Below are positions 12,051 through 47,065 of a stretch of DNA of 64,000 bases, one piece after another. Numbering within the stretch: position 1 is the stretch's first letter; each line of letters opens with the position of its first letter. The stretch lies in the sequence record OQ383623.1, one strand, 5' to 3'. The position numbers were made by a program, and so were the translations under genes. Under the pieces are notes generated by a model. It was not told the origin of the DNA. It searched no databases and saw only the letters and a list, made by a program, of their open reading frames with translations.

Positions 12051-12181
12051 TAAAATAACCATGATGCCAGAAATGCTCCGATTGCACAGATGATAATCGT
12101 AATGCCAAGGTCTGTCCAGGTGGCACCATCATACGCACCTGTTGCAATCATGGCTGCGTTGACACTATTCACGACTGTCAT
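12050..12181 (-). CDS. 43-aa membrane micro-protein (not in ORF track)
   Basis: MTVVNSVNAAMIATGAYDGATWTDLGITIIICAIGAFLASWLF; overlaps the upstream ORF end. Confidence 0.45.
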   Translation of the reverse strand: MTVVNSVNAAMIATGAYDGATWTDLGITIIICAIGAFLASWLF

Positions 12182-12368: not shown

Positions 12369-12459
12369 GGAATGCCCATCCTTTCGTGCGGATAATCCAA
12401 CCCCAGGCACCACGAATCAACCACAGTGCAATACCGGTTAATACGATACCTTCAATCAT
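12355..12459 (-). CDS. 34-aa membrane micro-protein (not in ORF track)
   Basis: RBS AGGAG; ATG overlaps the upstream TGA; MIEGIVLTGIALWLIRGAWGWIIRTKGWAFHGKT. Confidence 0.45.
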   Translation of the reverse strand: MIEGIVLTGIALWLIRGAWGWIIRTKGWAFHGKT

Positions 12460-12647
12460 GTCCGTTCTCCTATATCTCGCCACTCACAACGCGTGTCAAA
12501 AAGGCGTTCTTTAAGAGCAGAGGCTAAATAGACAACTGCAGCGATAACCACCACGGCTGCACAAAAGGAGAGGTACAGTACCATCACAACAAACTGAAGG
12601 AACTGAAAACCCCACCAAGCCCATAAGCGCCAACCTTTATGATGCAT
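12456..12647 (-). CDS. small membrane protein
   Basis: Long hydrophobic stretch; start overlaps the SbcC stop. Confidence 0.55.
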   Translation of the reverse strand: MHHKGWRLWAWWGFQFLQFVVMVLYLSFCAAVVVIAAVVYLASALKERLFDTRCEWRDIGERT

Positions 12648-15147
12648 ATTTGATTATTACCCCTTCGTTATACACCGGTGGAAGCGTTACACCTTCTGGT
12701 TCTACGACACAGTAGGTGGCTTCGTTAAGTTTAGAATGAACTTCCGCTTCATGCGAAACGACCAGCAATTGAGAAAACTCTCCCGACAACGCCAACGATT
12801 TAATGAAGTTAACTAATCGGTTTTTGTGTTCTTCATCCATGCCTTCAGATGGTTCATCCAATAACAAAGGATAATTTTGTAAACCAAGTGCTTTATACGC
12901 CGTTAAACGAAACATCATGTTGAAAATGATACGCTGTGCTTTTGAACCTTTCTTCACGTCAGGTACCAGTTCTTCATGGTCTTTTAATCGCACCGGGAAA
13001 GTATAATCCAAATCCCCGTCGGTTAGATCGCACGGAATAACCTGCATCGGATATGCCCACACCATTTCGATATACCGATTCATTAAATCCATGATGCGGG
13101 TAATCGCAGCATAAAAGTAACGACGCAATAATCCTTTTTCGGGTGAGACGGCATTGATAATCAATCTGGCATGGTGATGCTCTTTAAGCAATTCAGCTTG
13201 CTCTTTTTCCAGTTCCGCTAAACGTGCAATAGCCCCTTCCATTTGACGAAACCGTTCACGAGCGGAAGTGTACGCATCGAGCTTCGCTTCGCGTCGGTTT
13301 AACAACTCACGAACCACGACGTTGTTAACGGAGATGTTCATTTCCGATACCAGAGATTCGTAGCCTTTTTGGAAACGTTCGATTGCTTCTTTGGTTTGTT
13401 GCAGTTGGGTGGTTTCGCGTTCCAGCTCATTAGCTTGTCTGCGGTATTCTATCAGTCGACGGTTAGCCCCGTCCAGTTGTGAACGGATATGTTCAATTTT
13501 CTGGCTCAGCGCACCATCAACGTTACCTACTGCGGCAACAGCCTCTTGCCATTCCCGTTCCGCTGTTGCAAGCTTCGCCGATTGACGCAGATACATCATG
13601 GCCGAATCTAGCTCTTCAGTAAAGGCACGTGCAATGGCACCGTAACGATCCCGCGCCGTGGTGAAGATATCCAGCTCCTGCAGTTTACGGAAAAACAAAC
13701 CGACAACAGGATGGTTGGAATACGACATGACGATTTCGCGAATCGTACGTAAGCTACGGACGTCCTCTTCAATCTCTTTGCGGTCACGCAAAAGACTATC
13801 CATTTCGTCTTTCAGCTGCTTCTTCCAACCTTCATTATCGTTGATGGCCTTTTCAATTTCAGGTAACGACTTACGAATCCCAGGACGGAAACGGTGGTTA
13901 CACTGTGGACAATCAACTTCTGCAGTTTCTAAGAAGTGTTGACGGTCGTGGTATAAACCGTGTAGCACATTCTCACAACGTTGCAGCTTTTCAGATAGAC
14001 CCGCAGAGGTTAAATCCATACCCTGTAAACGCTTCTCTAACGCTCCCAGGCGATCTGTTGTCTTTAACTGGTCCAGATGCATGGACAACGGTAAATTCCA
14101 GTTACAGGCATCGTTTAACGCGTTCTGAATGCTGTCCACATCAATGCGGGTACCTTCAAACAGAGCCGGGAACATCCAGTTCTGTTGGAACGTTGCCAGT
14201 TCCTGTTTTAAGCTGTCGATTGTTTGTTTTAGACCGGTATGGTTGCGCATCAGATACGCTTGACGCGACTCCTCATCCAGTAGCTGTGACAACTCTTTAT
14301 TGTACATGTTGCATTCAGTTTCAGCAGAGGCAGCTTGCTCACGCCAGGCAACTACACGACTTTGAAACTCGTTAATCAGTTCGTCAGAAGGCAGAACACC
14401 ATAACGTTCCATAATGAGTTTTACGGCCGGTTGCAACGAAGCAATGCGTTTCCGGATACTATCAACCGAAACGGCGTTATCTAAACCGGGTCTCGCTTCA
14501 ATTGTGCGGTTTAATTCCTGAAGCTCAGCATCGAGTTCTTTCAAACGAACTTCCAAACGTGCACGATCTTCTTCATCGTCCACCACGCGCATTTTTGCCT
14601 CACCGATTTTTCGTCCGGTGTGCTCAATGGCCCCACTTAAACTGGAAGCGAGTTTACGCAAACGTCGATAGCAACCAACAACGTACGTCAGATCAGATTC
14701 TGACATTAACGTAAACCATTTACGACGAACTTCGGTAGTGGCGTCAGTTAATAAGGTCTCACCATTAATTAACTCTTTGATTTCTTTGGTGATTCCGGTT
14801 AATTGCTCCACCATGGAGTTGTAAACTTTGGCGTTTACCGAGTCTACGATGGAGACACCTTTAGTGATATTGAAAATACTACAAGACAAAGAAGACCCAC
14901 GTCGCAGGACTTCAAACTTAAGACGGTCGTCCCCGACTAACGCGTAGTTAGTGTAGGAACCACCTTCACGGAATTCTGATTTTGCTGGAGCTAAGGGGAG
15001 AAAAACAGATAGGAGGCTTGTTTTACCGCAGCCGTTGCCACCGAGGATGATGGTAACGGTTGACTTAAGGGTGAAATCAAACGTTTCGATTTCATGTAAC
15101 CCCATGCCGGTAAATCCTTTCAAAATGATACGTTCGACCTTGAGCAT
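12637..15147 (-). CDS. sbcC: SbcC/Rad50-like SMC ATPase
   Basis: Walker A GGNGCGKT, long coiled coils, zinc hook CPQC, signature KGSKAQ, Walker B LLLDEP, H-loop VVSH. Confidence 0.92.
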   Translation of the reverse strand: MLKVERIILKGFTGMGLHEIETFDFTLKSTVTIILGGNGCGKTSLLSVFLPLAPAKSEFREGGSYTNYALVGDDRLKFEVLRRGSSLSCSIFNITKGVSIVDSVNAKVYNSMVEQLTGITKEIKELINGETLLTDATTEVRRKWFTLMSESDLTYVVGCYRRLRKLASSLSGAIEHTGRKIGEAKMRVVDDEEDRARLEVRLKELDAELQELNRTIEARPGLDNAVSVDSIRKRIASLQPAVKLIMERYGVLPSDELINEFQSRVVAWREQAASAETECNMYNKELSQLLDEESRQAYLMRNHTGLKQTIDSLKQELATFQQNWMFPALFEGTRIDVDSIQNALNDACNWNLPLSMHLDQLKTTDRLGALEKRLQGMDLTSAGLSEKLQRCENVLHGLYHDRQHFLETAEVDCPQCNHRFRPGIRKSLPEIEKAINDNEGWKKQLKDEMDSLLRDRKEIEEDVRSLRTIREIVMSYSNHPVVGLFFRKLQELDIFTTARDRYGAIARAFTEELDSAMMYLRQSAKLATAEREWQEAVAAVGNVDGALSQKIEHIRSQLDGANRRLIEYRRQANELERETTQLQQTKEAIERFQKGYESLVSEMNISVNNVVVRELLNRREAKLDAYTSARERFRQMEGAIARLAELEKEQAELLKEHHHARLIINAVSPEKGLLRRYFYAAITRIMDLMNRYIEMVWAYPMQVIPCDLTDGDLDYTFPVRLKDHEELVPDVKKGSKAQRIIFNMMFRLTAYKALGLQNYPLLLDEPSEGMDEEHKNRLVNFIKSLALSGEFSQLLVVSHEAEVHSKLNEATYCVVEPEGVTLPPVYNEGVIIKYAS

Positions 15148-33334: not shown

Positions 33335-36300
33335 ATGCCGAGAGAAGATGCGGCGCAGTTTAACGGTACCCTCAGTACCGCTACTTACCCGAACCGTTAT
33401 TCGACGGTCATTCCCGTCGAAGCACCGTTCTATCGCATCGGGTTAACGTTAACCGTTACCGATAAAGCAACCGGAACCAAACGCAAGTTAATAGAAGGTC
33501 TTGATTATTTCTTAGGACATTACTTCCAGGAATTAGCCGAGGCTGAGAACGATGCAATATACGGCAGCATAATGCTGCTGAACGCCACAGAGGTAGAATA
33601 CGAGTTGTTGTCGGTTGGTCGACAGTATCGCATCCCTGCTTCTGAAATCGGCAAGTATCTGGTTAAGACGGATATGAAAGACCCGCGCAACTGCGATTGG
33701 TCTGAGCTGATGAAATATCCACCGATTATCTCGCCAATTGACCCGCCAAAAGATCTCGAAGAAGCGATTCTTCGCGATGAAATCGTAAAGGCGTTGGAAG
33801 ATATCCGTCTGGGTATTTTAGAGCGCGCCCACGAACTGGATGAGGCATTTGCCGAAGTTACCGATTTGATTTATCAGAACGGTAAACAGGTGTTTGATGA
33901 CGAAATGTATCAACACCACCTGATTAAAAATGCACATGGTTACACCTGCGGTGACATTGGCGCACTCCCTGTGCTCGGTAAGGCCGTGGATGCGACTAAA
34001 GCGTTTGGACGTACACTGGCAGAGTTAGTGACGTTAATGTCTACCAGTGGCATCCAACAGAAACACGTTGACATGCTTCTGGATAATACCCTGGGCGATT
34101 TACTGGGCCGTATGCGTGTTCTGAATAACGACGCGATTACGTTCCAAACAACGTCTGGTCACGTTATCAGCATGAAGGGTGAGAAGTTCATCATCACCTC
34201 GACAAAACCGCTGGTATTAAAAGCTGACCAGGATAACAACGAACCGGGTATCGCTACGGAGTTCAGTGCTGGTCTGAACACGCTTTGGGTTCACTCGGGT
34301 AAAGCAGGTGACAAGTGGGGCGCTTATGATGCAGGTGTGCTTGCACCTGTGTATAACAGCGTGTATCTCGTTACACCGGATATGGTTAAGATGTACTTGA
34401 CCTCGGTGAAGATACTTCCAGCAAACGCCTACTTCAAGTCCAGCGACACGTTGAAGATTTACGGCTCTGGTAAAGAAACAAACAAAGTTTACATGAATGC
34501 GGAGCTGCCTGCAGCAACCACAACTGTGCAGGGTTTGTTTGCGATTACTAACCTCTCGGCATCCGCTGCGGCGTCCACTGCAATCTCTCAAAAAGCTGTT
34601 ACTGACTTGAAGAACAAACTCGACGGATATGTGGACGACACGTATACAGTCAACGGTAAAGGGTTTGTATTAGATTCAAACGGGCAGATGCATCTGACCT
34701 TAACCGCGGCAGATTTCGGTATTGAGAAAATGGACAATACCGGACCGTTAGAAAAGCCAGTTACTAACGCATTGCGTACCGTGCTATCAGGCAAAGCGCT
34801 TACAACGCACACCCACACCATTGCAGATCTAGATAACGTGCCGTACGCATCCACGTCTGTTACAGGTTTGGCTAAACTGTGGGATGCAATCGACACTACC
34901 TCGGATAAGATGGTCACTTCGCGTCAGGGCTTCTTGCTTGAACAAAAGATTGACACACTGAATGACAAGATTGGTACGTTATTACCGGCGTGGACTGTCG
35001 GCGGATCATCGTACGGCAACAATAACTTCTTGCCTATACCAGTCCAGGGGAACTACGAAGGGTATACCAAAAACCAAACCTGGCAGAAAGGTTTGGCGCG
35101 TTACGAGTCTGGTAAGGTTTACTCGCTCCGTAACGGTTCTAACGGGAATCCACCAGGTGACTGGGCTATCTATTACGCCTATGCTGATGTGTCGCCAAGC
35201 AATACGCTGGAAAATATGCAGCAGACGTCCGTACGTTATCGACCCGCTGGAATGTCGGCGTATCCTGGGGTGAATCTGGTTGCTATTGTGATTACCGGTA
35301 CAGATGCAATGATCTGCTTAGGCAGTGATGGTGCGTATTACCTGGTCATCTTTGACGGCACCATTGACCATGCAAAACATCATCGTGTTGTTAAAGTTCA
35401 GTTGGGCGATTACCGAAATGGTAACGCGGCCGGTGTGATTACAACCGCTCCATGGGTTGTTGATCCATCAACAAACGATTTGATCGTTTGCAACGAGCGG
35501 GTTTATCTGCTCCGTACTGTGCTTACCTCCGGTGACTATTTCGTGAGTATGCGTAGCATCGCACTCGACGAACTTAATCTGGGTGGTAGCAACACGTTTG
35601 TGGCGGATGTGTTAACAGGTGGGATGTTAACGTCGGGAGATAATATCTACTTGCGTCAGGGTCAGAAACGTTCTGATACAGATGTGTTGGTAGCGCCAGT
35701 AACACAAATCTACGCAGACGCATCGGCGAAGTGGAATAGTGCGCGAAATTTCGTCCATGGTCCGGAATGTAATCACGCGATTGGTGTGGATGGGTTGAAC
35801 TTTCGTGTTGGTTTAACTCCAACGGTTTGGTTTGCTTCTACTACAGGGCAAACTATTAACTTTAAACAATGGGTGTCAAGCTTTGTTGTTGATTGTAGTT
35901 CAATGACGATAACGCTGGAAGGTGCTGATCGATTCCCTATTGTGGCCGATCTTACCACGGTTCGTTATAACGGTGGCGCTGAGATTGGGATTCCGAGCCG
36001 GAAATGGGGCGAAGGTCAAGCTAATAACCGAACCTTTGCAACATCGCAAGACAAGTATATCGTTTCGCAAGGACATGCAGGCGATCGCGACCTAATGCCT
36101 TATGTCACGATTACAACGTTAGATGACGGTGTGAGTTGGTACGAGTACCTGTCGTGCGACTACAACTTCAGTGCCAGAAGTTTTAGTGCGGTAATGTTAA
36201 ACCAAGGTCGTGGTTCTATCTACGAGCTGGGTATGGCGTATCCGCTGACTCTGGGAGCGAATTCCAGACTTATCTGGTTGTCACAGCCGCGTACCCGTTT

Positions 36301-38518
36301 GGCAATTGAAGTTGAGTTTGATCCGAACACCACTTATTCAGGTAAAGCGGGGTATGGACCAACTAACAATCGTCGTGTAGTAGATTCTACCACGTACGAG
36401 AATCTGTCGCAGATGTGCCACATTGTTACACCGGCGTCGCCTGGTACAGAGTTAAACGGCTGGTATTGCACAGGACCAGAAACATTCCCTTACCACAACG
36501 TTTCTGGCACTTTCACGATTCATGCCGATCGGTTGACGCTGTCACAAGCCGAATGGGATAAGATGAAGCAGATGATCATCGACGGCGCACCGGCTGGCGC
36601 TGCGAATGGTTATGCTTCGGAATTTATCCTTGCCGCAAATAACGCCGGAAAGGCACTGTTCTCCATTTGGTTCATCGGCATTGGTACGGCCACACCGCTC
36701 ACGTTAGCACAAGTAGCATGTACGCGTACTGTGAACAATGTTAACTTGTTGGATATCTACTACTTTACACTGAAACCAACAATCAGCAACGGGCAGGTAA
36801 CATTCCCGGCAGCGATATTGGCATTGTTTGACTTCTATAACAACCTCGACTATGGCTTGAACTATGCTACGTTGGGTGAGATAACGGGAGGAAAAACACG
36901 CCGGCCGGGACAACCTACACTGGTGTCAGTAGATGGTACTCAGTTCGGGTTGTATCTTCCACACACGTTAACCTTGCGCCAAATTGGCGACTTGGGTGCG
37001 CTTAACTACGGTGTTGGTCTTACGCTGTCTAATGGTACCTGGACGCGTTCTTCTGCTCCACACGGCATTGGACGCATGGCACCATCCCACACTCCAGTCA
37101 GCCCAGCTTATCTGGCTCATCGTGATCAGGTGATGCTACACAACTCATCTCTCGACTACGTCTATTGTGGTGGTATCGCAATGTCGTCGAGAGATTTTGT
37201 CGCGGCTCCTAATTTTAGTGGCCCGACTGAATCGGTTGTCATTGCTGGTGTGGAAACAGCCGAAGGTTGGCTGGTATATGTGACTGAGGAAGTTAACCTG
37301 CGTTTCGGCTCGAGCACTTATAAGCTGCCTACGTGGTATATTGACCTCAGCGCAGCATTTCCAACAAACCATCAGAACCGGACATTCTACCTGCACGCCA
37401 AGGTAGAAAATGGTACACCGAAGTACGTAATGGACGTGACTCAACATCCAGACACTGAAACGGAACTCTATATCGGGTATGTTAAAACGGGCTCGTCGCG
37501 AGTCGTCGAGACTAACGTCGAACATGCTAAGCGATTGGGGGCGGTGAAACAACTGTTGGAACATGCGGCGGTTGAGAATAAGCATGATGTGGAAGTGGGA
37601 AGGGATGCAGCAACGGGCAGACTGGCACCATTGCGTAAAGAAGCGATGGGTCCTTTGTCGATCGATGCTACGAAAGGCTATCTAGATAGTCAGTTGCTTT
37701 ATACCGTATCTGACGCACAGCGTCGCGGTAAAGCGATGGTGTCCAAACGTTTCGAAGGCTTGAAAACTTTGCCGGCGTTTACTCAGGCAAACAAGTCGGG
37801 GGCGTTTTGGAAACATCCTACAACAATTGCGACGGTAACGGCCGATGAGAACGGTGAAGCGGCATCGTTGGGAATGGAGTGGGTAGGTATTCCAACGCCC
37901 GCTTTCTCTCCGACCTCAACGAACTTGATGGTGGTGGTGCAAAGTAAATTCGTCGTCCCAGGTACACCGGGAGTAGAAACGACCTTTAATGTCCACGTTG
38001 CCCCATGGGAGGCGGTGGATGGCTTTTTCTACAACGTCGAAGCGGAAGGTACGGATGTTAACATTGATGAAAATCCAGAAGTGTTATTGCCGTCACCACA
38101 CACCGTGCACCACAAACAGCACTCTCTGCCAGCAGGCGTGCCGTGCACCTTTACATTTGTCGCGGCGGTAAGTTCTTCAGCGCTCGAAACAGCTAACCAG
38201 CATATTTGCTCTTGGCTTTTCACTGACGCTGGGGGACTACCAATCACCACCGATCTTTCGGATAGTAAGATTCAAATCTTACCACAGCCGGGAGAGACCA
38301 ACGGCACACCAGTTGTTCTGAACAGTCGTAGCTACACGTTTACGAATGTGACAGGTGCAATCCCGGTTGTTACCACGGGCGCTCAGGGTTTATTCCCACC
38401 ACCGATCGTGGCGTGGGATGGCGATGATCTTACGTTAACGATTGCGCACGATTGGGTGAACGAGAGAGGACGTCAACAGCCTGATATTATCCAGGTCAAT
38501 CTTATGTTCCGTACCTAA
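33335..38518 (+). CDS. tail fibre protein (paralog 3)
   Basis: PFY...LIEGLDY N-domain; FGIEKMDNTGPLEKPVT; HTHTIADL; ATTTVQG/ASTSVTG fibre repeats; RBS AGGAG before ATG 33335. Confidence 0.75.
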   Translation: MPREDAAQFNGTLSTATYPNRYSTVIPVEAPFYRIGLTLTVTDKATGTKRKLIEGLDYFLGHYFQELAEAENDAIYGSIMLLNATEVEYELLSVGRQYRIPASEIGKYLVKTDMKDPRNCDWSELMKYPPIISPIDPPKDLEEAILRDEIVKALEDIRLGILERAHELDEAFAEVTDLIYQNGKQVFDDEMYQHHLIKNAHGYTCGDIGALPVLGKAVDATKAFGRTLAELVTLMSTSGIQQKHVDMLLDNTLGDLLGRMRVLNNDAITFQTTSGHVISMKGEKFIITSTKPLVLKADQDNNEPGIATEFSAGLNTLWVHSGKAGDKWGAYDAGVLAPVYNSVYLVTPDMVKMYLTSVKILPANAYFKSSDTLKIYGSGKETNKVYMNAELPAATTTVQGLFAITNLSASAAASTAISQKAVTDLKNKLDGYVDDTYTVNGKGFVLDSNGQMHLTLTAADFGIEKMDNTGPLEKPVTNALRTVLSGKALTTHTHTIADLDNVPYASTSVTGLAKLWDAIDTTSDKMVTSRQGFLLEQKIDTLNDKIGTLLPAWTVGGSSYGNNNFLPIPVQGNYEGYTKNQTWQKGLARYESGKVYSLRNGSNGNPPGDWAIYYAYADVSPSNTLENMQQTSVRYRPAGMSAYPGVNLVAIVITGTDAMICLGSDGAYYLVIFDGTIDHAKHHRVVKVQLGDYRNGNAAGVITTAPWVVDPSTNDLIVCNERVYLLRTVLTSGDYFVSMRSIALDELNLGGSNTFVADVLTGGMLTSGDNIYLRQGQKRSDTDVLVAPVTQIYADASAKWNSARNFVHGPECNHAIGVDGLNFRVGLTPTVWFASTTGQTINFKQWVSSFVVDCSSMTITLEGADRFPIVADLTTVRYNGGAEIGIPSRKWGEGQANNRTFATSQDKYIVSQGHAGDRDLMPYVTITTLDDGVSWYEYLSCDYNFSARSFSAVMLNQGRGSIYELGMAYPLTLGANSRLIWLSQPRTRLAIEVEFDPNTTYSGKAGYGPTNNRRVVDSTTYENLSQMCHIVTPASPGTELNGWYCTGPETFPYHNVSGTFTIHADRLTLSQAEWDKMKQMIIDGAPAGAANGYASEFILAANNAGKALFSIWFIGIGTATPLTLAQVACTRTVNNVNLLDIYYFTLKPTISNGQVTFPAAILALFDFYNNLDYGLNYATLGEITGGKTRRPGQPTLVSVDGTQFGLYLPHTLTLRQIGDLGALNYGVGLTLSNGTWTRSSAPHGIGRMAPSHTPVSPAYLAHRDQVMLHNSSLDYVYCGGIAMSSRDFVAAPNFSGPTESVVIAGVETAEGWLVYVTEEVNLRFGSSTYKLPTWYIDLSAAFPTNHQNRTFYLHAKVENGTPKYVMDVTQHPDTETELYIGYVKTGSSRVVETNVEHAKRLGAVKQLLEHAAVENKHDVEVGRDAATGRLAPLRKEAMGPLSIDATKGYLDSQLLYTVSDAQRRGKAMVSKRFEGLKTLPAFTQANKSGAFWKHPTTIATVTADENGEAASLGMEWVGIPTPAFSPTSTNLMVVVQSKFVVPGTPGVETTFNVHVAPWEAVDGFFYNVEAEGTDVNIDENPEVLLPSPHTVHHKQHSLPAGVPCTFTFVAAVSSSALETANQHICSWLFTDAGGLPITTDLSDSKIQILPQPGETNGTPVVLNSRSYTFTNVTGAIPVVTTGAQGLFPPPIVAWDGDDLTLTIAHDWVNERGRQQPDIIQVNLMFRT

Positions 38519-38565: not shown

Positions 38566-39768
38566 ATGGCCGAAATCATTCATCAGTACCCGCTCGACCT
38601 TACCGGGACATTAACGTCGAACGCCGTTACACGGCGTATTACGTTAGGTTCTGGTAAAGTTAACCGGGCTTTTGCTTTTCCTGACGGAGCTTTCTACGCG
38701 GATACCTTCCGCTTGGCAGCTGCGAATAAACCAGGTGTCTACCCGTACAAACGCGGCACAGACTACGAACTGATTTTTGCACATACTGCATATCAGAAAA
38801 TGACCAAGAACCGCGAAGTGGTCATGGGTGTGGTGGTAACTAACTCGGCCATTCCTACTGATATCGAAGTCTCTGCGCAAGTCGTTGGTGGTTTTCAGTC
38901 CGCGAACGTCGAAGGTATCCGACAAGCGATTGCGTCTCTGAAAATTGAAGACCGTGTGGTGGACTTCAAGGATCTTCGAAACGTACCCGATACGTTCCCG
39001 TCCGCCCCGACGTATAAAGACCTTGGCGATATCTACGGTTTTGAGTATATCATTACCGTACTCGCGGGGATTAAAGATGCGATTAACTCCGGCTCTGCAG
39101 TACAGCTGGAAGAAATTAAAGGTATTCTGGACGGTCTGAGAAACGACTTCCTCGACGCCTTAAATACCCACATCAATGCCGAAGGTAACGTACACAATCT
39201 CGACATTCATCAGGTTAATGGCCTGACGGAGACGGAGATTCGTGCCCTGATTCAAAGTGTACAGACTGCCATTGACGCCACTATCAACGATATCGGCGAC
39301 TTAAGAGCAGCAGACACGGCGTTGGGGCAACGCATCGATGCAATTGTGGCTTCGTTAGCCGCGTGGAACGACCAGCTTAACGTGGTTGCTCAAAATTACC
39401 AGAAAATGTCGTTAGCATTAGCTAACCTTAATTCTCTGGTGTTGCAATTACAGAAGATGGTTAACGATCTTCAGTCTGCACTGAATGAAACAAATCAGCG
39501 CGTCACGGATCTTGAGAATCAGGGCAAAGACTTCCAACAGCAAATTGATAACCTGCAAGGACAAATCAACAGTCTTAAAACTCAGGTTATAAACAACACC
39601 AACGCAATTTCGCAGGCAAACCAGAATCTGGCGAACCATGCGGCTGCGGATAACCCACACCCGAATTACCTCCATAAACAGTATGGAGGTGTTGTGCAGG
39701 CTGCTGTTCACGTCAACAACAGCCTCACCTCGCGCGACGATGTTCAAGCTGAAGCGGGTACTAAGTAA
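38566..39768 (+). CDS. short fibre-like protein with long coiled coil (paralog 4)
   Basis: QYPLDLTG...RGTDYEL N-domain; about 120-aa heptad region; HAAADNPHPNY; RBS AAGGAG before ATG 38566. Confidence 0.75.
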   Translation: MAEIIHQYPLDLTGTLTSNAVTRRITLGSGKVNRAFAFPDGAFYADTFRLAAANKPGVYPYKRGTDYELIFAHTAYQKMTKNREVVMGVVVTNSAIPTDIEVSAQVVGGFQSANVEGIRQAIASLKIEDRVVDFKDLRNVPDTFPSAPTYKDLGDIYGFEYIITVLAGIKDAINSGSAVQLEEIKGILDGLRNDFLDALNTHINAEGNVHNLDIHQVNGLTETEIRALIQSVQTAIDATINDIGDLRAADTALGQRIDAIVASLAAWNDQLNVVAQNYQKMSLALANLNSLVLQLQKMVNDLQSALNETNQRVTDLENQGKDFQQQIDNLQGQINSLKTQVINNTNAISQANQNLANHAAADNPHPNYLHKQYGGVVQAAVHVNNSLTSRDDVQAEAGTK

Positions 39769-39776
39769 CTTGTTTA

Positions 39777-39822
39777 CGAGCCGGACTATGTTTATGGACA
39801 TAGTCCGCTCGTTCTACTTTTT
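39777..39822 (+). terminator. terminator-like hairpin between the fibre genes and the Cys-rich operon
   Basis: CGAG-c-CGGACTATG/CATAGTCCG-CTCG stem, then TTCTACTTTTT. Confidence 0.5.
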
Positions 39823-39833: not shown

Positions 39834-40226
39834 ATGGCGATATCTATTAAAGACGTCAGAAACCGCGTCCAGATAGTCGAAGCTAACATGGCGACAGGCC
39901 CCCGCATCGAGGCGCAAGTGGCCTCTAAAGCCCATAATGCAGCAGACCGATTTGGGGGTTGGACGAAAGCACAGCTAGATTGCGGCGGGACATGTTCTTG
40001 GACGTGCTCTAACGGTTGCTCGCATGGCTGTTCGAGCTGTTCAGGAAGCTGTTCTGCTTCTTGTATCGGTAGCTGTTCTTCGACGTGTGGCGGTAACTGT
40101 TCTGGTTGCTCTGGTTGTTCTGGTGGTTGCAGTAGTAGCTGTACCGGTAACTGTTCAGGTGGTTGCGGCGGCTCTTGTTCCGCAAACTGCTCCGGGGCCT
40201 GCTCCGGCGGCTGTTCAGGTCGCTAA
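39834..40226 (+). CDS. Cxxx-repeat precursor-like peptide 1 (49-aa leader, 81-aa core, 21 Cys)
   Basis: Cys-free leader then near-continuous (C-x-x-x)n of Ser/Gly; RBS AAGGAAG; upstream of radical SAM genes. Confidence 0.85.
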   Translation: MAISIKDVRNRVQIVEANMATGPRIEAQVASKAHNAADRFGGWTKAQLDCGGTCSWTCSNGCSHGCSSCSGSCSASCIGSCSSTCGGNCSGCSGCSGGCSSSCTGNCSGGCGGSCSANCSGACSGGCSGR

Positions 40227-40236
40227 GGGGGATTAA

Positions 40237-40638
40237 ATGGCAATTGGATTAAAAGAACTGAATAACCGATTAAACACGATCGATGCAAACGCTTTAAAGA
40301 ACACCACGAATGTGCAAAACTACATTCGCAATAAAGCTACGAATAACGCCGACTTGTTCGCAGGTCAAGGCCGTTCGCACTATGACTGTGGTGGCACATG
40401 CTCTTTTAGTTGCTCGAGTTGTTCTGGCGGGTGTACTGGGTCTGCTACGGGTGGTTGTGGGTCGACTTGTTCCGCAAACTGTGTATCGGGCTGCAGCAGC
40501 AGCTGTACGGGTTGCAGCTCTTCATGTTCTGGTGGTTGTAGCGGAACGTGTACTGGTAACTGCTCTGGCGGCTGTGGCAAATCCTGCTCCGCAAACTGCT
40601 CCGGCGCGTGTTCTGGTGGTTGTTCAGGTCCTAACTGA
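40237..40638 (+). CDS. Cxxx-repeat precursor-like peptide 2 (50-aa leader, 83-aa core, 20 Cys)
   Basis: Paralog of peptide 1 in both leader and core; RBS GGGGA. Confidence 0.85.
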   Translation: MAIGLKELNNRLNTIDANALKNTTNVQNYIRNKATNNADLFAGQGRSHYDCGGTCSFSCSSCSGGCTGSATGGCGSTCSANCVSGCSSSCTGCSSSCSGGCSGTCTGNCSGGCGKSCSANCSGACSGGCSGPN

Positions 40639-40649
40639 CGGAGGCTTAT

Positions 40650-40856
40650 GTGATCAGTCTCAAGACTATTCGAAACCGTCTCGTTACGGTAGAAGGTTAC
40701 ATTACAACCGCACAGGCAAACAACTATATCGCTAACCAGGGCACCGTGTCGACCACAAATAACCTGGCTGGCTTACCGCTTTCTCACTATAACTGTAATG
40801 GTGGGTGTAGCTGGTCCTGCAGCGGAAGCTGTAGCCGTGGAGCGGGGAATCGATAA
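40650..40856 (+). CDS. Cxxx-repeat precursor-like peptide 3 (48-aa leader, 20-aa core, 4 Cys)
   Basis: GTG start with GGAGG; same leader motif and SHYNCNGGCSWSCS junction. Confidence 0.75.
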   Translation: MISLKTIRNRLVTVEGYITTAQANNYIANQGTVSTTNNLAGLPLSHYNCNGGCSWSCSGSCSRGAGNR

Positions 40857-40878
40857 CAGAAAACGTTCGGAGTATTAA

Positions 40879-41766
40879 ATGAAAAACGATTTGCATCTTG
40901 CGTATAAAACCACATTCAACCACCCGCTGCATCTATCTTCCCCAGATTCAGTGCGTGCACACCTTGCTGACAAAGTCAGACTGATTGCACAGATTCCTGG
41001 TGAGTGGCCAAAGGTTCGTGGTCGCTTCTTGACCGACAAGAAGAACTACACCGTAGAAAATACGTTTAAGATCCGTGATATGGTTGCAGAGGCCATCGTT
41101 ATCTTTAACGGCGATGGTAACTCTCGTGGCGTGTTAGTCGACGGTAAGTATTTCTTCAGTGAAGGGATTTTGAACAACAGCGTCGATTTAGAACTGATGT
41201 TTACACCGTTTGACGAACTTGAAGCAAAACCGATGGCGCGCCGTTGGTGGAGTCCGGACTATCTGGGCTCGTTCCCTTACTACTTTGTACTGGTACCTGC
41301 CGATACGGCAACGTATTTCGACACCGAACCATACATCGATATCGAGGGGTATAAAGAACTCGGCATCACCCGTTTAGCGGACATGATGGCGTATAGCTAT
41401 AAGTTCGTGTGGGATAAAAAGCGTTCTGTCTGGTATGCGCTGACTGACGATTTCGAAATCACCAAACGTATTCGTAAGCCGTGGATGCAACACCTGGTTC
41501 AAACCCGATATGGGGATTACCCGGCGACAGAAGCGGATTTGAGTAAGCTGGTAAGTTTCCTCTTAACGAAGGTGGATTTAACGAAAGAAGAAGCAGAAGC
41601 TGTTTCTGAGATTCGTGGTCGTTCGGTAACGTTGGCCGATTTGAAACGTCTGAACGAAAGACACGCCGACCTGAACAAAATTTTAGCTGCCTATCACGAC
41701 CCGATGCTACTGGTGCCTGGCGCTAATGTAGACGAAGATCCTTTATTCGCCATTGATTATATTTAA
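40879..41766 (+). CDS. hypothetical protein in the Cys-peptide/rSAM operon
   Basis: RBS GGAG; 295 aa; no recognised motif. Confidence 0.75.
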   Translation: MKNDLHLAYKTTFNHPLHLSSPDSVRAHLADKVRLIAQIPGEWPKVRGRFLTDKKNYTVENTFKIRDMVAEAIVIFNGDGNSRGVLVDGKYFFSEGILNNSVDLELMFTPFDELEAKPMARRWWSPDYLGSFPYYFVLVPADTATYFDTEPYIDIEGYKELGITRLADMMAYSYKFVWDKKRSVWYALTDDFEITKRIRKPWMQHLVQTRYGDYPATEADLSKLVSFLLTKVDLTKEEAEAVSEIRGRSVTLADLKRLNERHADLNKILAAYHDPMLLVPGANVDEDPLFAIDYI

Positions 41767-41788
41767 AAATATACTGGAGCAACCTGCA

Positions 41789-42703
41789 ATGACAGATCAA
41801 GTAGAATCCAGGATCTCGTCTGAACTGTACGACAAACCGTCAATTCTGTCGGTTGTCGCAACTTCTAAGTGTAACTTAGACTGTAGCTTCTGTGGAGGGG
41901 CTTATTACATGGATAGAGAAGATACTTCTCGTGAGTTTCAACGTGAAGAGATTCTCTCGATTTTAGAGAAGAATCCGGATATCGGTGAGATTCATTGGAC
42001 GGGCGGTGAGCCGCTGTTAGCGCAGCGTAAGATTGAAGACTTCGTGAACGAGTTGAAGGAGTCTCATCCGAACCTCCGTCATCACATGTACACCAACGGT
42101 TTAAAGATGCGTAAATCGCATCTGCCGTTGCTGAAACAGTTCGACCTTATCTTTGTGTCCATTGACGGCTACAAGAAGTCGGAACGTCCGTTTATGAACT
42201 TTGTAAACGGTGGTAATCACGAAGCGCTGGAAGTGCTGTACGAGCTGGACAACTATTACACCTGGGGTGTGATGACGCGTGACCAGTTAGGTGATAAACG
42301 CTGGTACGAAGATTTCATCGAGCTGCACCGAGCAATCTATCATTACCGTCCAGGTGGTGTGTCGTTGTTGTTTGATGCGATGATGCCGAAACCGTTATCG
42401 CCAGACCACGTCATGAACTTCATGTACGGGTATTGGAAAATACTCGACAATATCGAACGCCTTAACATGCAGAACGATTCTGAATGTGGGCTTGCGATCA
42501 GTAAAATGTTCGATACCGAGTGCAACACGTGCAGTGAAGTGCTGTGGCTTAACGCCGACGGTACGCAGGAGCAAATTCAGAACGCCCCAGAGATATTGGA
42601 AGTCGGCTGTAATCGCCTGGCGCGTTCTATCGGCGTTGATGCGTATAACTACATCAACCGTGTAATTTCTGCTAAGCGTAAACGGGCGGCGAACAATGAG
42701 TAA
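41789..42703 (+). CDS. radical SAM enzyme 1 (short C-terminus, no complete SPASM)
   Basis: CNLDCSFC (CxxxCxxC), WTGGEP, YTNG, VSIDG; RBS GGAG before ATG 41789. Confidence 0.9.
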   Translation: MTDQVESRISSELYDKPSILSVVATSKCNLDCSFCGGAYYMDREDTSREFQREEILSILEKNPDIGEIHWTGGEPLLAQRKIEDFVNELKESHPNLRHHMYTNGLKMRKSHLPLLKQFDLIFVSIDGYKKSERPFMNFVNGGNHEALEVLYELDNYYTWGVMTRDQLGDKRWYEDFIELHRAIYHYRPGGVSLLFDAMMPKPLSPDHVMNFMYGYWKILDNIERLNMQNDSECGLAISKMFDTECNTCSEVLWLNADGTQEQIQNAPEILEVGCNRLARSIGVDAYNYINRVISAKRKRAANNE

Positions 42704-44024
42704 TAGCGAACAGCAAATCCAGTACACACCACGCACGTATCAGGTTGTGACTAACTTGTCATGTAACCTGGACTGCGAATACTGCTACGAGCGTAAATAT
42801 CCGCGTAACAACAAAGTAGCAGACGTGATTGATTTTATCCACGCTTGTTTCGAGCGTGATAAAGATATCCCGAACGTTGAAGTCATCATCGATATCATCG
42901 GTGGTGAGCCGTTCATGCAGCCTAAACTTCTTTTGGCGGCCTTTGAAACCGCAGAGAAGTTATGCGCAGAACACAATCGCCCGTATATGTTCAGTATCTC
43001 CACGAACGGTACGCTTCTGGACCGTCCGCTGAACAAAGAAATTATCGAGCGCTGGAAAGACAAACTGTCTATTGGGGTCTCCATCGATGGTTTACCTGAA
43101 GTCCATGACAAATATCGTATCTTTACCACGACGCGTGAAGGGTCGTACGAAGCTGCGGTACGCGGTTACAATTATCTGAAGAGTGTTGGCATCGCTGAAC
43201 TGGGCGTAAAAGCGACGTTTACGATCGATACATTGCCGCACTATGCCGCCAGCATGAAATCGTTAATTGACATGTCCGGCGGTGGTACCATTTCTGGTAA
43301 CGTAACGTACGAAGATATCCTGCCGCGCCATATGGCGTTGGATATCGCGAACCAGATGATGGACGTGATGGACTACTGGATTGAGAAGGGTCTGCACACC
43401 AACCCGCGTAACACGATTACGCACATCATCCCGGATGGCCTGAACTTTATGGCAACTTGGGACCCGGATTGGCGTGACAAACTCTTACATGACGACTCTG
43501 TTCGTCTCGACCCAGAACGCCTGAAACCGTACTGCGGTACGTTGACGCACATGACCTGTCTCGGCTTTGATCGCAAGATTTACGGTTGTAACCGTTTCAT
43601 GTCCACGGTAACTTCCCGTTCTGCTGTAGCAGAACTGGTCGGTCGTGAGTTTGTGAGCCTGGACGGTGGTAAGCTGTTAGAAGAGATTCAAACGCAGTAC
43701 ACCAACTACCCAGAAACCTGTTTAGGGTGTCCGATGAAACACAGCTGCGGTAGCTGCGCAGCAGCATCGTACGAAAACGGTGAAGGTACACTGGAAGACC
43801 GTAAAGCGTATCACGCCGAGCGTCGTCAGTGTGGTTGGACTACTGCGAAGCTGATGGCGGCGGAATATTGGTATCAGAAAACTGGTACGACTCGCGCATC
43901 AGATTTGCATGATAAATCCATGTGCTATTGTTCACGTTGTGTACGCCAACGTGCTGAAGCAGAAAAATTACAAAACGGAGCCCAGAATGAAGTCAATACT
44001 GATTCACAATTTTACGAAGCGTAA
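42696..44024 (+). CDS. radical SAM/SPASM peptide maturase (Cxxx-repeat-target type)
   Basis: CNLDCEYC, IIGGEPF, ISTNGTLL, VSIDGLPEVHDKYR; SPASM Cys cluster YCG...TCLG...YGCNRF...CLGCPMKHSCGSC...QC. Confidence 0.92.
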   Translation: MSNSEQQIQYTPRTYQVVTNLSCNLDCEYCYERKYPRNNKVADVIDFIHACFERDKDIPNVEVIIDIIGGEPFMQPKLLLAAFETAEKLCAEHNRPYMFSISTNGTLLDRPLNKEIIERWKDKLSIGVSIDGLPEVHDKYRIFTTTREGSYEAAVRGYNYLKSVGIAELGVKATFTIDTLPHYAASMKSLIDMSGGGTISGNVTYEDILPRHMALDIANQMMDVMDYWIEKGLHTNPRNTITHIIPDGLNFMATWDPDWRDKLLHDDSVRLDPERLKPYCGTLTHMTCLGFDRKIYGCNRFMSTVTSRSAVAELVGREFVSLDGGKLLEEIQTQYTNYPETCLGCPMKHSCGSCAAASYENGEGTLEDRKAYHAERRQCGWTTAKLMAAEYWYQKTGTTRASDLHDKSMCYCSRCVRQRAEAEKLQNGAQNEVNTDSQFYEA

Positions 44025-44553
44025 ACTGCACTTGGTCGATCGCTTCCTGCGCAAAAGCAAGCTGTACAATGTGCACGCAATTGTGGCAGGGGAAGACTTC
44101 ACTGATGAAATCCAAAGCCTGTTGATTAAATACGGGCTGAATGTGATGATCCCGGTCTACTGCGTTGAGAAAGGACACGAGTCTGTCGCGGAAATCGAAA
44201 AGCGCAACCCTGGCTTTGAGAAGCGACTGCTTGCATACCCACGCCACAAAATCGAACTGCTACGTCACTCTATTGATGAAGCCAGTCCTGAAAGTTTAGT
44301 GGCGTTGGGCTTGTCATTCCCGCGGATGCGTATTCGTAACTTACGCTCCAATAACCCGGTTGACGCTTATTACACAGAGCGTCAAATCTTCGAAGAACAC
44401 CTGCTCCCGCAGTTGGAAGAAGAAGAGCAACACAACATTTCTCTGTTGTGGGCCGGTAACCTCGATCAGGACTTCCAGATGCTGGACTTCGGTTTGTTGT
44501 TAGAACTTGGCCTGATTGAGGAGGACGAATGTCTGTTACTGACAAAAGCTTAA
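43987..44553 (+). CDS. hypothetical protein in the Cys-peptide/rSAM operon
   Basis: RBS GGAG before ATG 43987; overlaps the rSAM end. Confidence 0.7.
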   Translation: MKSILIHNFTKRKLHLVDRFLRKSKLYNVHAIVAGEDFTDEIQSLLIKYGLNVMIPVYCVEKGHESVAEIEKRNPGFEKRLLAYPRHKIELLRHSIDEASPESLVALGLSFPRMRIRNLRSNNPVDAYYTERQIFEEHLLPQLEEEEQHNISLLWAGNLDQDFQMLDFGLLLELGLIEEDECLLLTKA

Positions 44554-45200
44554 CGAACGAAGAGATCCGCGCCCGTTATTTCCAGCGTGATTTGCCGATT
44601 GATCGTCACGGTAATTTCATGGAACGAATCGGTGCGCAGGATCAGGGCCGTACCGGATTTTGTGCATTACTCCATTACCATCTCATCGAAGGGATGTCTG
44701 ATAAAGAAGCCCTGGCACGCATGAAGCTGTATGAGATGTCGGAGATTGAAGCTAACTTCACATTGAAACGCACGAAAGAGTTTATTGCTAATGTGCTGGA
44801 GATTGACCTCGACGAAATTCGCGGGAATCTGAAATCTACCGCACGTTACATTTACGAAGACGTGCAGAAGATGCTGTTGGAACTCGACCACCGCTACGAA
44901 GATGAGCGCCATGGTTATATCGAGTTTGAAGGTAGTCACTTTCAAGCCGATGAATCGTCGCGTACCATCCTCGGTCAATACATTCAGGCAGATACCGCAC
45001 CAGAATACTGGCTCGATACGCTGAATACTAAGCACAGTCCGTTTACAGTAGCCCAATGTAAAGCGTTGCTGGCCGCTATTGTTGCACGTGACCAAGTGTT
45101 GCACTCAGCAATGGCAGATAACAAACGCCAAATCCGTGAGTTAGCTGAAAAGCGCGATTACACTGGATTAAAAACATTGTCCGAATCACTCGGCATGTAA
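44529..45200 (+). CDS. DUF4376-like tail-fibre assembly protein
   Basis: C-terminal YIEFEGSHFQADESSR...WLDTLNTKHSPFTVAQCKALLAAIV...K fits the DUF4376 pattern (G..fq.D..S...W...dN....lt..ql..l). Confidence 0.65.
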   Translation: MSVTDKSLTNEEIRARYFQRDLPIDRHGNFMERIGAQDQGRTGFCALLHYHLIEGMSDKEALARMKLYEMSEIEANFTLKRTKEFIANVLEIDLDEIRGNLKSTARYIYEDVQKMLLELDHRYEDERHGYIEFEGSHFQADESSRTILGQYIQADTAPEYWLDTLNTKHSPFTVAQCKALLAAIVARDQVLHSAMADNKRQIRELAEKRDYTGLKTLSESLGM

Positions 45201-45202: not shown

Positions 45203-45260
45203 AAAGAAAATAAAGGCCCTACCTCCCCGAAGGGAGGTAGGTACCTTTTATTTATTTCTT
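45203..45260. terminator. bidirectional intrinsic terminator closing the rSAM operon
   Basis: CCTACCTCCC-CGAA-GGGAGGTAGG with A- and T-tracts. Confidence 0.85.
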
Positions 45261-45281: not shown

Positions 45282-45809
45282 TTAAACGAATCCGTCCAGT
45301 TCACCGTTGGTGGTGCTCAGGTCAGTTTTAACGATTGGCTGCGTTACAGTATAAACTGCAAGGCTGGCAGGTTGGTATTTAATGTGGCCTTCTTTCACCA
45401 TAACAGTGATGACTTTCTCACCACTGTCGCCGTCTTCGCGTGAAATGGTGAGTTCAGACAATGCAAACGCATCTTCCGTTTTACCGGCGGCAATTAGATC
45501 TGCGTTGACAAAAGCAAGCACTTCTTCATCGGTATCCCATTCTGCCTGGTCAGCGGTAACTGCTTTCGCACCGATGATGTTCAATGAATTGAGGCGGGTA
45601 TAATGCAGCTCTTTCTCGCCAGTAAAGTTAGCGGATTCCGCGGTGGCAGTGATGGTGAGTTTGGAGTTGCGTGTGTCTCCAGAATCTGCTGGTGAATAGT
45701 CAGCAACAGCGCCGAATGTAACGTCAGCAGTAGTTAACGGACTAGACAGTCCGCTGTTTGCAGCATTAAACAGCGCGACGAGTTGGTCTTTTGCAGAGAT
45801 GACTGCCAT
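45282..45809 (-). CDS. putative virion structural protein (C-terminal TDLSTTNGELDGF motif)
   Basis: Resembles the N-domain of the RDNP paralogs (NS.LTI.A...F.GE..L.Y.RL) and ends in the motif shared with the C-type paralogs. Confidence 0.65.
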   Translation of the reverse strand: MAVISAKDQLVALFNAANSGLSSPLTTADVTFGAVADYSPADSGDTRNSKLTITATAESANFTGEKELHYTRLNSLNIIGAKAVTADQAEWDTDEEVLAFVNADLIAAGKTEDAFALSELTISREDGDSGEKVITVMVKEGHIKYQPASLAVYTVTQPIVKTDLSTTNGELDGFV

Positions 45810-45932: not shown

Positions 45933-46424
45933 ATGAAACGTCTATTTATCGTATTCGCGATTATAAACCTGTTGGCCGGTTGTGTTCAGTCGCCAAGCAA
46001 CATAGGACAATTTAGCGCCACACCAGTAAAGAATCACGACTTGGTGATTTATACATGCACAGGGACGCAGGAGAAGTTTGTAGACTACCGTCCGGTACTG
46101 GACAACCTACAAATGATGCCGCGGTCAGTAACAGTAATGGATGTGGGTGCAAACTGGGTAGCAGCGTGGGACGGTGGCAAACTAGAGTCACCGATGATGT
46201 TTAAAGATACAATTGGCAAAATCGACGGGAATGTTAACACCACCACAGGTGAGCGTTATTACCGTATTAATAAAACCGTAAACGATAGCCCCACTTATTC
46301 TTTTTCGGATGTGAACCCGTATACCGGCGAAGGTAAAGGGATGACATTCTTTCGCTGCAGCAGCGGGTTTATCGGTGAAGTTCCTACTCCGATTACGATT
46401 GTTCCGTTAGAAGAAAATAAATAA
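45933..46424 (+). CDS. lipoprotein
   Basis: MKRLFIVFAIINLLAGC lipobox. Confidence 0.75.
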   Translation: MKRLFIVFAIINLLAGCVQSPSNIGQFSATPVKNHDLVIYTCTGTQEKFVDYRPVLDNLQMMPRSVTVMDVGANWVAAWDGGKLESPMMFKDTIGKIDGNVNTTTGERYYRINKTVNDSPTYSFSDVNPYTGEGKGMTFFRCSSGFIGEVPTPITIVPLEENK

Positions 46425-46549: not shown

Positions 46550-47065
46550 TTAGATTTTAACTAGCTTGCTCCAATCGATGGGTTGTTGCTTAACCACTTT
46601 AACGGTACCACGTGTCGGTGACCAGAAGGTGATATCAGGCTGGTTGCGTACGTCAACATGCAGCCAGGTAATATCGCACTCGATAAAGTGAATAAACGGA
46701 AACTCGTTAGGGTTCGCGGCAATATAGTCGTGTACTTTCTGCAACGGAGTATCAAGCATTGTTGCATCAAACGCATTACCGAATTTATGCATACTGCCTG
46801 ATTCGGCGTACAGTTTGTTTGCACGAGTTTGCCAATCTCCACCCTTTGGTTTCTCTTGATTAATAAAGAACTGCAGGGTACGCAGACTACGCTGTTGCTG
46901 GGAACTGGTTAAAATCACCATCCGCCCAAAACGATTACGAATCTGTTGGAGCGAGATTAGCAGTAACGGATTAAGGAAACGAATAGCACCTTCACCATAT
47001 TTCGCGATGTACTCCTGCGGCATCAACTCTTTTAACGCGAAGTTGGCAGGATTCGGATGAAACAT
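46550..47065 (-). CDS. peptidase M15-family Zn peptidoglycan peptidase
   Basis: RSLR, SMHKFGNAFD (SxHxxGxAxD), WLHVD. Confidence 0.85.
   Translation of the reverse strand: MFHPNPANFALKELMPQEYIAKYGEGAIRFLNPLLLISLQQIRNRFGRMVILTSSQQQRSLRTLQFFINQEKPKGGDWQTRANKLYAESGSMHKFGNAFDATMLDTPLQKVHDYIAANPNEFPFIHFIECDITWLHVDVRNQPDITFWSPTRGTVKVVKQQPIDWSKLVKI

Follow-up and report, generated by a model that had tools for sequence, protein, structure and literature searches.

Why does a jumbo phage carry three cysteine-laden small proteins and two radical S-adenosylmethionine (SAM) enzymes directly behind its tail-fibre genes? The question is raised by positions 39834–45200 of OQ383623, the genome of Salmonella phage MET_P1_082_240 (genus Seoulvirus, an SPN3US-like jumbo phage), within a stretch of 64,000 nucleotides that we call the window and whose positions equal those of the record. 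The region matches MET_P1_082_240 at 100% identity and the model jumbo phage SPN3US at 98%, and it is unmentioned in the paper describing MET_P1_082_240 (PMC11180984). It holds eight co-oriented genes, spaced between +22 nt and a 38-nt overlap, which encode in order three Cys-array proteins (pepA, pepB, and pepC), a gp165-like protein, the radical SAM enzymes rSAM1 and rSAM2, and gp162-like and gp161-like proteins. A first reading from the letters alone (the original prediction) had described eight tightly packed, co-oriented genes with 21, 20, and 4 Cys in the three peptides, and all open reading frames (ORFs) are as it described them.

We give a probability of roughly 0.55 to the region being a tail-fibre accessory module with an enzyme-crosslinked Cys ladder, and not a classical secreted cluster for peptides that are ribosomally synthesised and modified post-translationally (RiPPs). 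Judged from sequence, host-binding phage fibres are probably stapled here by enzyme-made crosslinks. A broader proposal we advance more tentatively, at slightly less than even odds: in several unrelated lineages of tailed phages, a fibre would end in a Cys ladder that is covalently stapled in the cytoplasm by radical SAM enzymes which the phage itself encodes. These lineages comprise the SPN3US-like jumbo phages and phages or prophages of the T4-like, P2-like, and lambda-J types; a Firmicute siphophage adds a looser Cys-array relative. Radical SAM genes constantly accompany the array inside tail modules, and the array domain is homologous to the C terminus of fibres.

Cys Arrays at the C Termini of Tail Fibres in Other Phages

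Relatives of rSAM2 with 32–39% identity occur in other phages and prophages, each together with a similar Cys array that ends a larger protein of the tail module. A Deferribacter abyssi prophage (L004) encodes a GpJ-like tail protein, proteins of 147 and 316 amino acids (aa), a 302-aa fibre, a gp165-like protein, a short radical SAM enzyme, and an rSAM2-like enzyme; the fibre carries HxHxDDRYYTE repeats and a terminal array (...NADQLGGQAGSYYRCSDCSWTC...). The same layout recurs on the Desulfoluna butyratoxydans chromosome (L038), with a 257-aa fibre, three radical SAM enzymes, and a second fibre. On a 213-kb T4-like contig (L006/L025), a 568-aa array protein is encoded directly 3′ of a gp13-like neck gene and is followed by radical SAM genes, and a P2-like contractile module (L026) runs from baseplate wedge, tail protein, and tail fibre through a 401-aa fibre-array protein, a radical SAM enzyme, a gp165-like protein, and an rSAM2-like enzyme to the sheath. 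A looser relative of pepA (E = 1e-6) is the 226-aa Cys-array protein of a Firmicute siphophage prophage (L118), which follows tape measure, Dit, Tal, and a 1373-aa collagen-like fibre, and which is itself followed by proteins of 192 and 102 aa, a radical SAM enzyme, holin, and endolysin. A more elaborate and more distant variant of the theme is found in IMGVR_UViG_3300027816_002956 (L030, positions 6911–12763), where two giant fibre-like genes stand with a gene whose 199-aa product terminates in a CQxxCQ array and with four consecutive radical SAM genes.

All of the fused proteins share with pepA, pepB, and pepC the junction N-A-x-x-L-x-G...Y-x-C-x(2,3)-C-S-W-[S/T]-C, of which the siphophage protein lacks the CSW part. 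The profile of phrog_6085, the family of pepA, pepB, and pepC, aligns to the C-terminal parts of the fused fibres from profile positions 5–35 onward, and residues 6–123 of pepB align by BLASTP to a 211-aa fibre-like protein (P0184). N-terminal matches to PHROGs for tail fibre, collar fibre, or minor tail proteins are found in the proteins of L026 and L038 and in P0184, P0193, P0197, P0210, and P0291. N-terminal homology and location in a tail module place the fused relatives among the tail fibres, and pepA, pepB, and pepC share the C-terminal module only. Because their “leader” of ~50 aa can be aligned to the stretch of fibre ahead of the array, the three proteins look like a distal fibre module that has been split into separate genes; the siphophage likewise keeps its small array gene separate, next to a large fibre gene.

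A wider profile search of 1.84 billion representative proteins returned 500 relatives at E ≤ 1e-3, of which we examined the best 146. The array lies at the extreme C terminus in 98 of these 146, and the junction motif is present in 52. Ten of the longer survey proteins were sampled, and in half of them (5/10) the N-terminal part matches a PHROG for tail fibre, tail collar fibre, or minor tail proteins. One of the matched proteins, P0291, also bears the common fibre motif LDADLLDGKHGSDY (read by eye); in a tblastn search against cultured phages its N-terminal part alone was matched, by Vibrio phages, with the array masked by the low-complexity filter. Proteins P0178–P0183 are 1,580–1,800 aa long, and their last ~600 residues form one unbroken Cys-x-x-x array containing 145–168 Cys.

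The alignment of the ~50-aa N-terminal part with fibre segments preceding the array also means that the leader-plus-core frame in which the peptides were initially cast is probably wrong. Under a classical RiPP scheme, modified cores would be cut from leader-bearing precursors and freed at lysis as antimicrobial, signalling, or anti-defence peptides. Three small paralogues, N-terminally conserved and C-terminally rich in Cys, suit such a scheme, as do distant bacterial relatives in which radical SAM enzymes of ~730–740 aa are paired with 49–67-aa peptides and, in one case (L028), with ATP-binding cassette (ABC) transporters as well. We consider it very unlikely nevertheless. The “leader” is homologous to fibre shaft segments, leader and core are both conserved so that no hypervariable core can be recognised, the location is invariably within tail modules, and the phage rSAM2 branch is distinct from the bacterial ~740-aa enzymes, at ~25% identity as against 34–39% between phage lineages. 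Searches of the eight module proteins against NCBIfam, Pfam, and PHROGs found no peptidase, transporter, exporter, immunity gene, or RiPP recognition element (RRE), in agreement with the original prediction on the first and third of these, and rSAM2 has no room for an N-terminal RRE since its cluster motif already begins at residue 23. The preference for a fibre component over a bacteriocin, voiced at the outset, thereby gains support: the array is the C terminus of a fibre in four lineages and a looser relative lies beside a fibre in a fifth, with radical SAM genes adjoining.

Conservation and Annotation of the Cys-Array Genes

pepA (39834–40226, + strand; phrog_6085, E = 7e-40) encodes 130 aa with 21 Cys, arranged as a helical N-terminal part of ~49 aa, the junction LDCGGTCSWTC, and a ladder of C-[S/T]-G-x units. 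Its paralogues pepB (40237–40638, +; phrog_6085, E = 2e-41) and pepC (40650–40856, +; phrog_6085, E = 3e-25 over profile positions 2–67) encode 133 aa with 20 Cys and 68 aa with 4 Cys, respectively, and all three genes are unannotated in OQ383623. pepC keeps the N-terminal part and the junction, and it is short in 18/18 relatives, of which the more distant retain only 2 Cys. The arrays are built from C-[S/T]-G-[S/T/G] units, in which Cys is the sole invariant residue; Cys spacings are 3 and 4 only, and Asp and Glu are nearly absent from the arrays. Runs of at least five consecutive C-x(2,3) units were found in pepA and pepB alone when the whole 64-kb window was scanned in six frames.

Among 18 related phages, every Cys column is at least 90% conserved (21/21 in pepA and 20/20 in pepB), and differences at the three codon positions number 6080/4486/11736 in pepA and 5972/4783/12298 in pepB. 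Because these differences concentrate at third positions, we take both frames to be coding and under purifying selection, and the codon-position pattern together with the conservation of the Cys columns rules out chance or a low-complexity artefact as the source of the ladder. The gene order gp167-pepA-pepB-pepC-gp165-rSAM1-rSAM2-gp162-gp161 is fixed in 18/18 jumbo-phage loci, across which rSAM2 identity ranges from 63 to 100%, so that the predicted co-occurrence of peptides and radical SAM enzymes among jumbo phages is borne out. A Cys-array ORF lies within 7 kb at every locus with a full-length rSAM2 relative, and approaching from the other side, from Cys-array proteins, we found a radical SAM gene in 3/3 contexts. 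The adjoining Cys-x-x-x target by which neighbours of TIGR04115 enzymes are recognised is accordingly present at all 18 jumbo-phage loci and at all other loci with full-length relatives. Relatives of rSAM2 are carried by 62 SPN3US-like jumbo phages, whose hosts are Salmonella, Escherichia, Proteus, Erwinia, and Cronobacter, and by 11 contigs of uncultured faecal phages; in phiKZ, homologues of gp161–165 are lacking (PMC5105663 supplement). In the records of SPFM9, 10, 12, and 14 (LR535907–LR535912), the region is matched only as ~40 short pieces with 46% coverage, and the radical SAM and gp165 proteins are scrambled (P0081–P0084 and P0141–P0157), which suggests sequence-quality faults in these assemblies.

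Ala/Val-rich shadow ORFs in another frame overlap pepB (40310–40735, +) and pepA (40024–40236, +). The SPN3US gene product gp166 (AEP83999/YP_009153460; L001, positions 12477–12812) is the shadow frame of pepB, and thus in the wrong frame; it is the only ORF annotated at the Cys-array genes of SPN3US, whose reference proteome lacks all three Cys-array proteins. Among 5.8 billion predicted proteins nothing is more than 72% identical to pepA, whereas an identical rSAM2 is encoded on 598 contigs, and we therefore conclude that gene callers miss Cys-array genes as a rule. The result is a systematic annotation gap: reference jumbo-phage genomes either omit these genes or give them in a wrong frame, so that their products were invisible to proteomics. 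One database protein (P0167) starts as pepB and continues in the shadow frame, through a frame slip in the metagenomic assembly or in the gene call.

The published virion proteomes of SPN3US list gp155, 158, 160, and 167–171 and none of gp161–166 (PMC5694885 supplements), and they indicate that the annotated gp161–gp165 are not packaged. On pepA, pepB, and pepC the same proteomes are silent because the annotations searched lacked all three proteins. The absence of gp161–gp165 would suit an alternative in which the Cys-array proteins are modified in the cell and act there as transient fibre scaffolds or chaperones, or as metal or redox buffers, outside the finished particle. The conservation of pepC despite its 2–4 Cys, the terminator-like hairpin upstream of the module, and the small proteins standing unfused to a fibre in the SPN3US-like lineage lean the same way, as does the frequent occurrence of assembly-factor genes directly 3′ of fibre genes. 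We judge such a helper role unlikely, since the array is the covalent distal end of a fibre protein in four other lineages and a chaperone role would leave it unexplained why 20 Cys are conserved and why radical SAM enzymes, two or three of them, are needed.

Two Radical SAM Enzymes and Their Likely Chemistry

rSAM1 (41789–42703, +, with an alternative TTG start at 41753) and rSAM2 (42696–44024, +) encode proteins of 304 and 442 aa, homologues of SPN3US gp164 and gp163, respectively. Both belong to the radical SAM superfamily (Pfam PF04055, 58.7 and 55.6 bits against a cut-off of 29.5), and the Cys triads are invariant in alignments of both families. In rSAM2 the CX3CX2C motif at residues 23–30 (C23/C27/C30) is retained across 15 relatives, in which eight further Cys are conserved (C280, C288, C298, C342, C345, C351, C354, and C379). 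A SPASM domain has 7–8 C-terminal Cys (Cx9-15Gx4C ... Cx2Cx5Cx3C ... C) that bind two auxiliary [4Fe-4S] clusters; the auxiliary Cys of rSAM2 follow a SPASM-like order but read Cx2Cx5Cx2C where SPASM has Cx2Cx5Cx3C, and the Pfam SPASM model (PF13186) gives no match at E ≤ 1. We retain the SPASM assignment made for rSAM2 in the original prediction as a tentative one, which rests on the eight conserved Cys and a full-length match to PapB.

Kinship to maturases of CXXX-repeat peptides had also been proposed. TIGR04115, the family of such maturases, is the best NCBIfam match of rSAM2 (125.6 bits, mainly over residues 18–235), with a score below the cut-off of 350; PapB follows (NF047865, 113.6 bits over residues 22–357, cut-off 340 not reached), and other peptide maturases rank behind these two. 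The candidate substrates behave alike: pepA, pepB, and pepC score 18.4, 16.4, and 13.7 bits with the 18-residue repeat model TIGR04114, close to its cut-off of 20 and in each case beneath it. The best sequence match of rSAM2 in the PDB is the thioether synthase CteB (5wgg), and we regard rSAM2 as the candidate thioether synthase of the module. rSAM1 combines a CX3CX2C motif with a reduced C-terminal Cys motif; it retains just 2–3 C-terminal Cys, two of them invariant, and C28/C32/C35, C248, and C274 are invariant in an alignment with prophage homologues. Its NCBIfam matches are confined to the radical SAM core domain, and no family can be assigned. Homologues of rSAM1 are present in L004, L026, and L038. 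In two metagenomic jumbo-phage relatives, a further rSAM1 paralogue is inserted between pepA and pepB (L008, positions 3542–4453; L023, positions 3543–4454), which brings the radical SAM genes of the module to three.

It is conceivable that the arrays are fibre modules and the chemistry is another one, with free Cys binding metal or Fe-S clusters, or with epimerisation, oxidation of Cys to formylglycine, or C-C crosslinking in place of thioethers. Both enzymes have anaerobic sulfatase maturase among their PDB and NCBIfam matches, rSAM1 fits no family, the arrays lack the acceptor residues (Asp, Glu, or Gln) that characterised ranthipeptide substrates possess, and the fused fibres also bear HxH repeats, a motif that binds metals in other fibres. 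We find this quite unlikely: the top matches of rSAM2 are thioether-forming maturases of Cys peptides, Cys is the one residue of the repeat that never varies, and simple metal binding requires no radical SAM enzyme, yet the co-occurrence is complete.

Comparison with Known Cys-Repeat Systems

The closest likeness is to the CXXX-repeat system (TIGR04114 and TIGR04115; PF27846, tSAM_targ_Cxxx_rpt), which likewise has long arrays with Cys at each fourth residue and an adjoining radical SAM/SPASM enzyme. That system has been defined in silico, and we know of no biochemical characterisation of it. The phage systems differ in having enzymes of 375–450 aa instead of the ~730–740 aa of its bacterial relatives, a second, short radical SAM enzyme and a gp165-like partner, no ABC or twin-arginine translocation (Tat) export genes, and a location in tail-fibre loci. 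None of the Cys-array proteins matched Pfam in a library copy that apparently does not include PF27846; precomputed matches to PF27846 exist for a pepB-type homologue (P0168) and for the 568-aa fibre of L006. Among bacterial arrays, L122 (positions 2996–7107) encodes Cys-array proteins with twin-arginine signals beside a 413-aa radical SAM enzyme and its own TatA/TatC, and L039 (Thermoguttaceae, positions 520–4689) encodes four Cys-array paralogues with twin-arginine signals, followed by a ~740-aa radical SAM enzyme. In every context the arrays would end up outside the cytoplasm and the enzymes would act inside it, which fits covalent crosslinks made before export or lysis.

The ranthipeptide maturases of the PapB/freyrasin and CteB/SCIFF systems are likewise radical SAM enzymes, of the SPASM type to which rSAM2 is tentatively assigned, and their targets are Cys motifs in repeats. 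Their substrates are short peptides, whereas the phage substrates would be proteins or fibre domains, and PapB substrates have an Asp or Glu acceptor at +4, where the phage arrays have the next Cys. Covalent or coordinative reinforcement of virion parts has precedents in the isopeptide chainmail of the HK97 capsid and in the HxH metal sites of T4-type fibres, with which the proposed ladder would share the reinforcement of extracellular virion parts that are assembled in a reducing cytoplasm. The HK97 chainmail is autocatalytic and HxH sites are simple metal binding, whereas the phage module has dedicated radical SAM enzymes beside the fibre gene. At the scale of proteins, the SPASM enzyme CrpC of Methanococcus voltae (TIGR04463) introduces ranthionine crosslinks into CrpA (PMC13692751, 2026), a large, N-terminally conserved protein of Cys repeats, alongside which stands a paralogue with fewer Cys, CrpB, comparable to pepC (PMC13692751). 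CrpC belongs to a different radical SAM family, to which rSAM2 scores only 57.6 bits, and the CrpA repeat has 17 residues with a C-X-X-Q/D motif, is archaeal, and has a suggested metal-related role and no viral link (PMC13692751). CrpC/CrpA demonstrates that crosslinking of this kind can be achieved on large Cys-repeat proteins (PMC13692751).

A Proposed Route to Stapled Fibres

We propose that pepA, pepB, and pepC encode, as separate proteins, a module found at the C-terminal end of tail-fibre proteins in other phages, composed of a short helical or shaft segment, the conserved junction, and a ladder of ~17–30 Cys in C-[S/T]-G-x units. The proteins would be made late in infection in a reducing cytoplasm, where disulfides cannot form. 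rSAM2, as a SPASM-type enzyme, would most likely turn Cys into thioethers onto neighbouring small residues, with rSAM1 as a probable second modifier and the gp165-like protein as a probable partner that presents the substrate. The product would be a covalently stapled, redox-independent, and protease-resistant rod or knob, which may join or cap the fibre apparatus encoded by the upstream genes gp167–gp171, with gp161–gp165 presumably working inside the cell and remaining unpackaged. We infer the thioether chemistry, the division of roles between the enzymes, and the incorporation of pepA, pepB, and pepC into virions from the kinships described above.

Several points weigh against this proposal. 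The acceptor residues of characterised PapB and CrpC substrates are missing, the array being nearly without Asp and Glu, and all scores of the peptide and maturase families lie below curated cut-offs (TIGR04115, 125.6 versus 350; TIGR04114, at most 18.4 versus 20). In SPN3US-like phages the array is unfused to a fibre, which leaves the mode of attachment of a 130-aa protein unexplained, and a simple stapled rod does not explain a pepC conserved with only 2–4 Cys. Owing to the hairpin with its U-tract between gp167 and the module, expression may be below that of the structural genes. Radical SAM enzymes are oxygen-sensitive, and these phages are grown aerobically. An AlphaFold2 (AF2) model of pepA, built from an 8-sequence alignment, reached a pLDDT score (predicted local distance difference test) of 44 and is uninformative. 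In the SPN3US mutant list examined (PMC5105663), which does not amount to a saturating screen, no amber mutation was mapped to genes 161–166. The chemical modification, and with it fibre stapling as a whole, is a prediction from sequence.

Genome mining had already revealed CXXX arrays paired with a radical SAM enzyme; what appears to be new is that the pair lies in a tail-fibre context, that the array is fused to fibres, and that a gp165-like partner is conserved alongside. Full-text literature searches on radical SAM enzymes in SPN3US, jumbo phages, and tail fibres, on thioethers, and on ranthipeptides encoded by phages gave no relevant result, and neither these searches nor a 2026 review of jumbo-phage biology nor the paper on MET_P1_082_240 yielded an account of the Cys-array genes or of phage fibres as targets of radical SAM enzymes. 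A cyanophage paper lists a radical SAM maturase merely as an “antibiotic synthesis gene.” If the proposal is true, it describes the first case of a virion structural protein modified by radical SAM enzymes and a new principle of virion assembly, in which dedicated radical SAM enzymes covalently reinforce receptor-binding fibres and supply a redox-independent stand-in for disulfides in host-recognition organelles. It would also give an orphan Cys-repeat/radical SAM family a biological role, making the “CXXX-repeat” family in part a phage fibre module, and enzyme-stapled protein rods would be of interest for protein engineering. SPN3US is an established laboratory model for which mass-spectrometry data exist.

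Partner Genes, Flanking Fibres, and Transcription Signals

The gp165-like gene (40879–41766, +; 295 aa; phrog_8030, E = 1e-149) has counterparts directly 3′ of the fibre-array gene in L004 and L038 and one gene further in L026. Its AF2 model is well defined (pLDDT 88, predicted TM-score 0.84), and comparison with PDB folds gave no match (best E = 0.43), as did a PDB profile search. The gp162-like protein (43987–44553, +; 188 aa; phrog_7988) is restricted to SPN3US-like phages, has no Pfam or NCBIfam match, and is absent from SPN3US virions. So is the gp161-like protein (44529–45200, +; 223 aa; phrog_8169), which contains DUF4376 at residues 121–205 (Pfam, 38.8 bits against a cut-off of 25) and has a weak match to phrog_2837, “tail protein.” The last gene had been called DUF4376-like and of a tail-assembly type; the domain is there, and DUF4376 has no established function in tail assembly. 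As a possible gp161 counterpart we considered a 206-aa protein upstream of the L026 fibre-array gene and rejected it, Pfam and PHROGs showing no match.

Upstream of the module lie giant fibre-candidate genes, gp170, gp169, and gp168, and then the fibre-like virion gene gp167. The gp168 homologue (33335–38518, +) is a giant tail/baseplate fibre protein by the annotation of OQ383623 and SPN3US, one of these large paralogues; in SPN3US, gp168 is a tail protein and, with gp169 and gp170, a “baseplate/tail fiber candidate” by virion mass spectrometry (PMC5105663; PMC5694885). The gp167 homologue adjoining the module (38566–39768, +) matches phrog_2163, “virion structural protein,” at E = 2e-109, has additional weak matches to tail-fibre PHROGs, and is annotated as “viral fiber protein”; gp167 is found in SPN3US virions (PMC5694885 supplements).

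The spacer between gp167 and pepA contains a stem-loop followed by a U-rich tract (39776–39812, +; ΔG −23.7 kcal/mol, z −4.5), than which 0/200 shuffled sequences fold equally well, and 3′ of it, before pepA, a conserved AAGGAA ribosome-binding site. The corresponding spacers of five relatives also bear a hairpin (z −3.1 to −5.4) with differing stem sequences. RNAalifold yielded no consensus fold, as the stems differ and MAFFT does not bring them into register; folding each spacer singly reveals the hairpins. The element is probably a leaky terminator or stabilises the mRNA, and given a hairpin with a U-tract before pepA, the module is probably transcribed by read-through at a lowered level. 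At the other end, a bidirectional terminator had been placed at 45203; a hairpin with T-runs on both strands does exist, at 45218–45241, with a 10-bp stem (7 GC pairs) and a loop of 4. It serves as an intrinsic terminator for the module and the convergent neighbour, a homologue of SPN3US gp160 (45282–45809, −), which is reported to be a high-abundance head protein present in >300 copies per capsid (PMC5694885). Further downstream, a 171-aa ORF (46550–47065, −) is a homologue of SPN3US gp158, which occurs at a low level in some SPN3US virion preparations, and a 163-aa ORF (45933–46424, +) starts with MKRLFIVFAIINLLAGC, which reads as a lipoprotein signal peptide with a lipobox.

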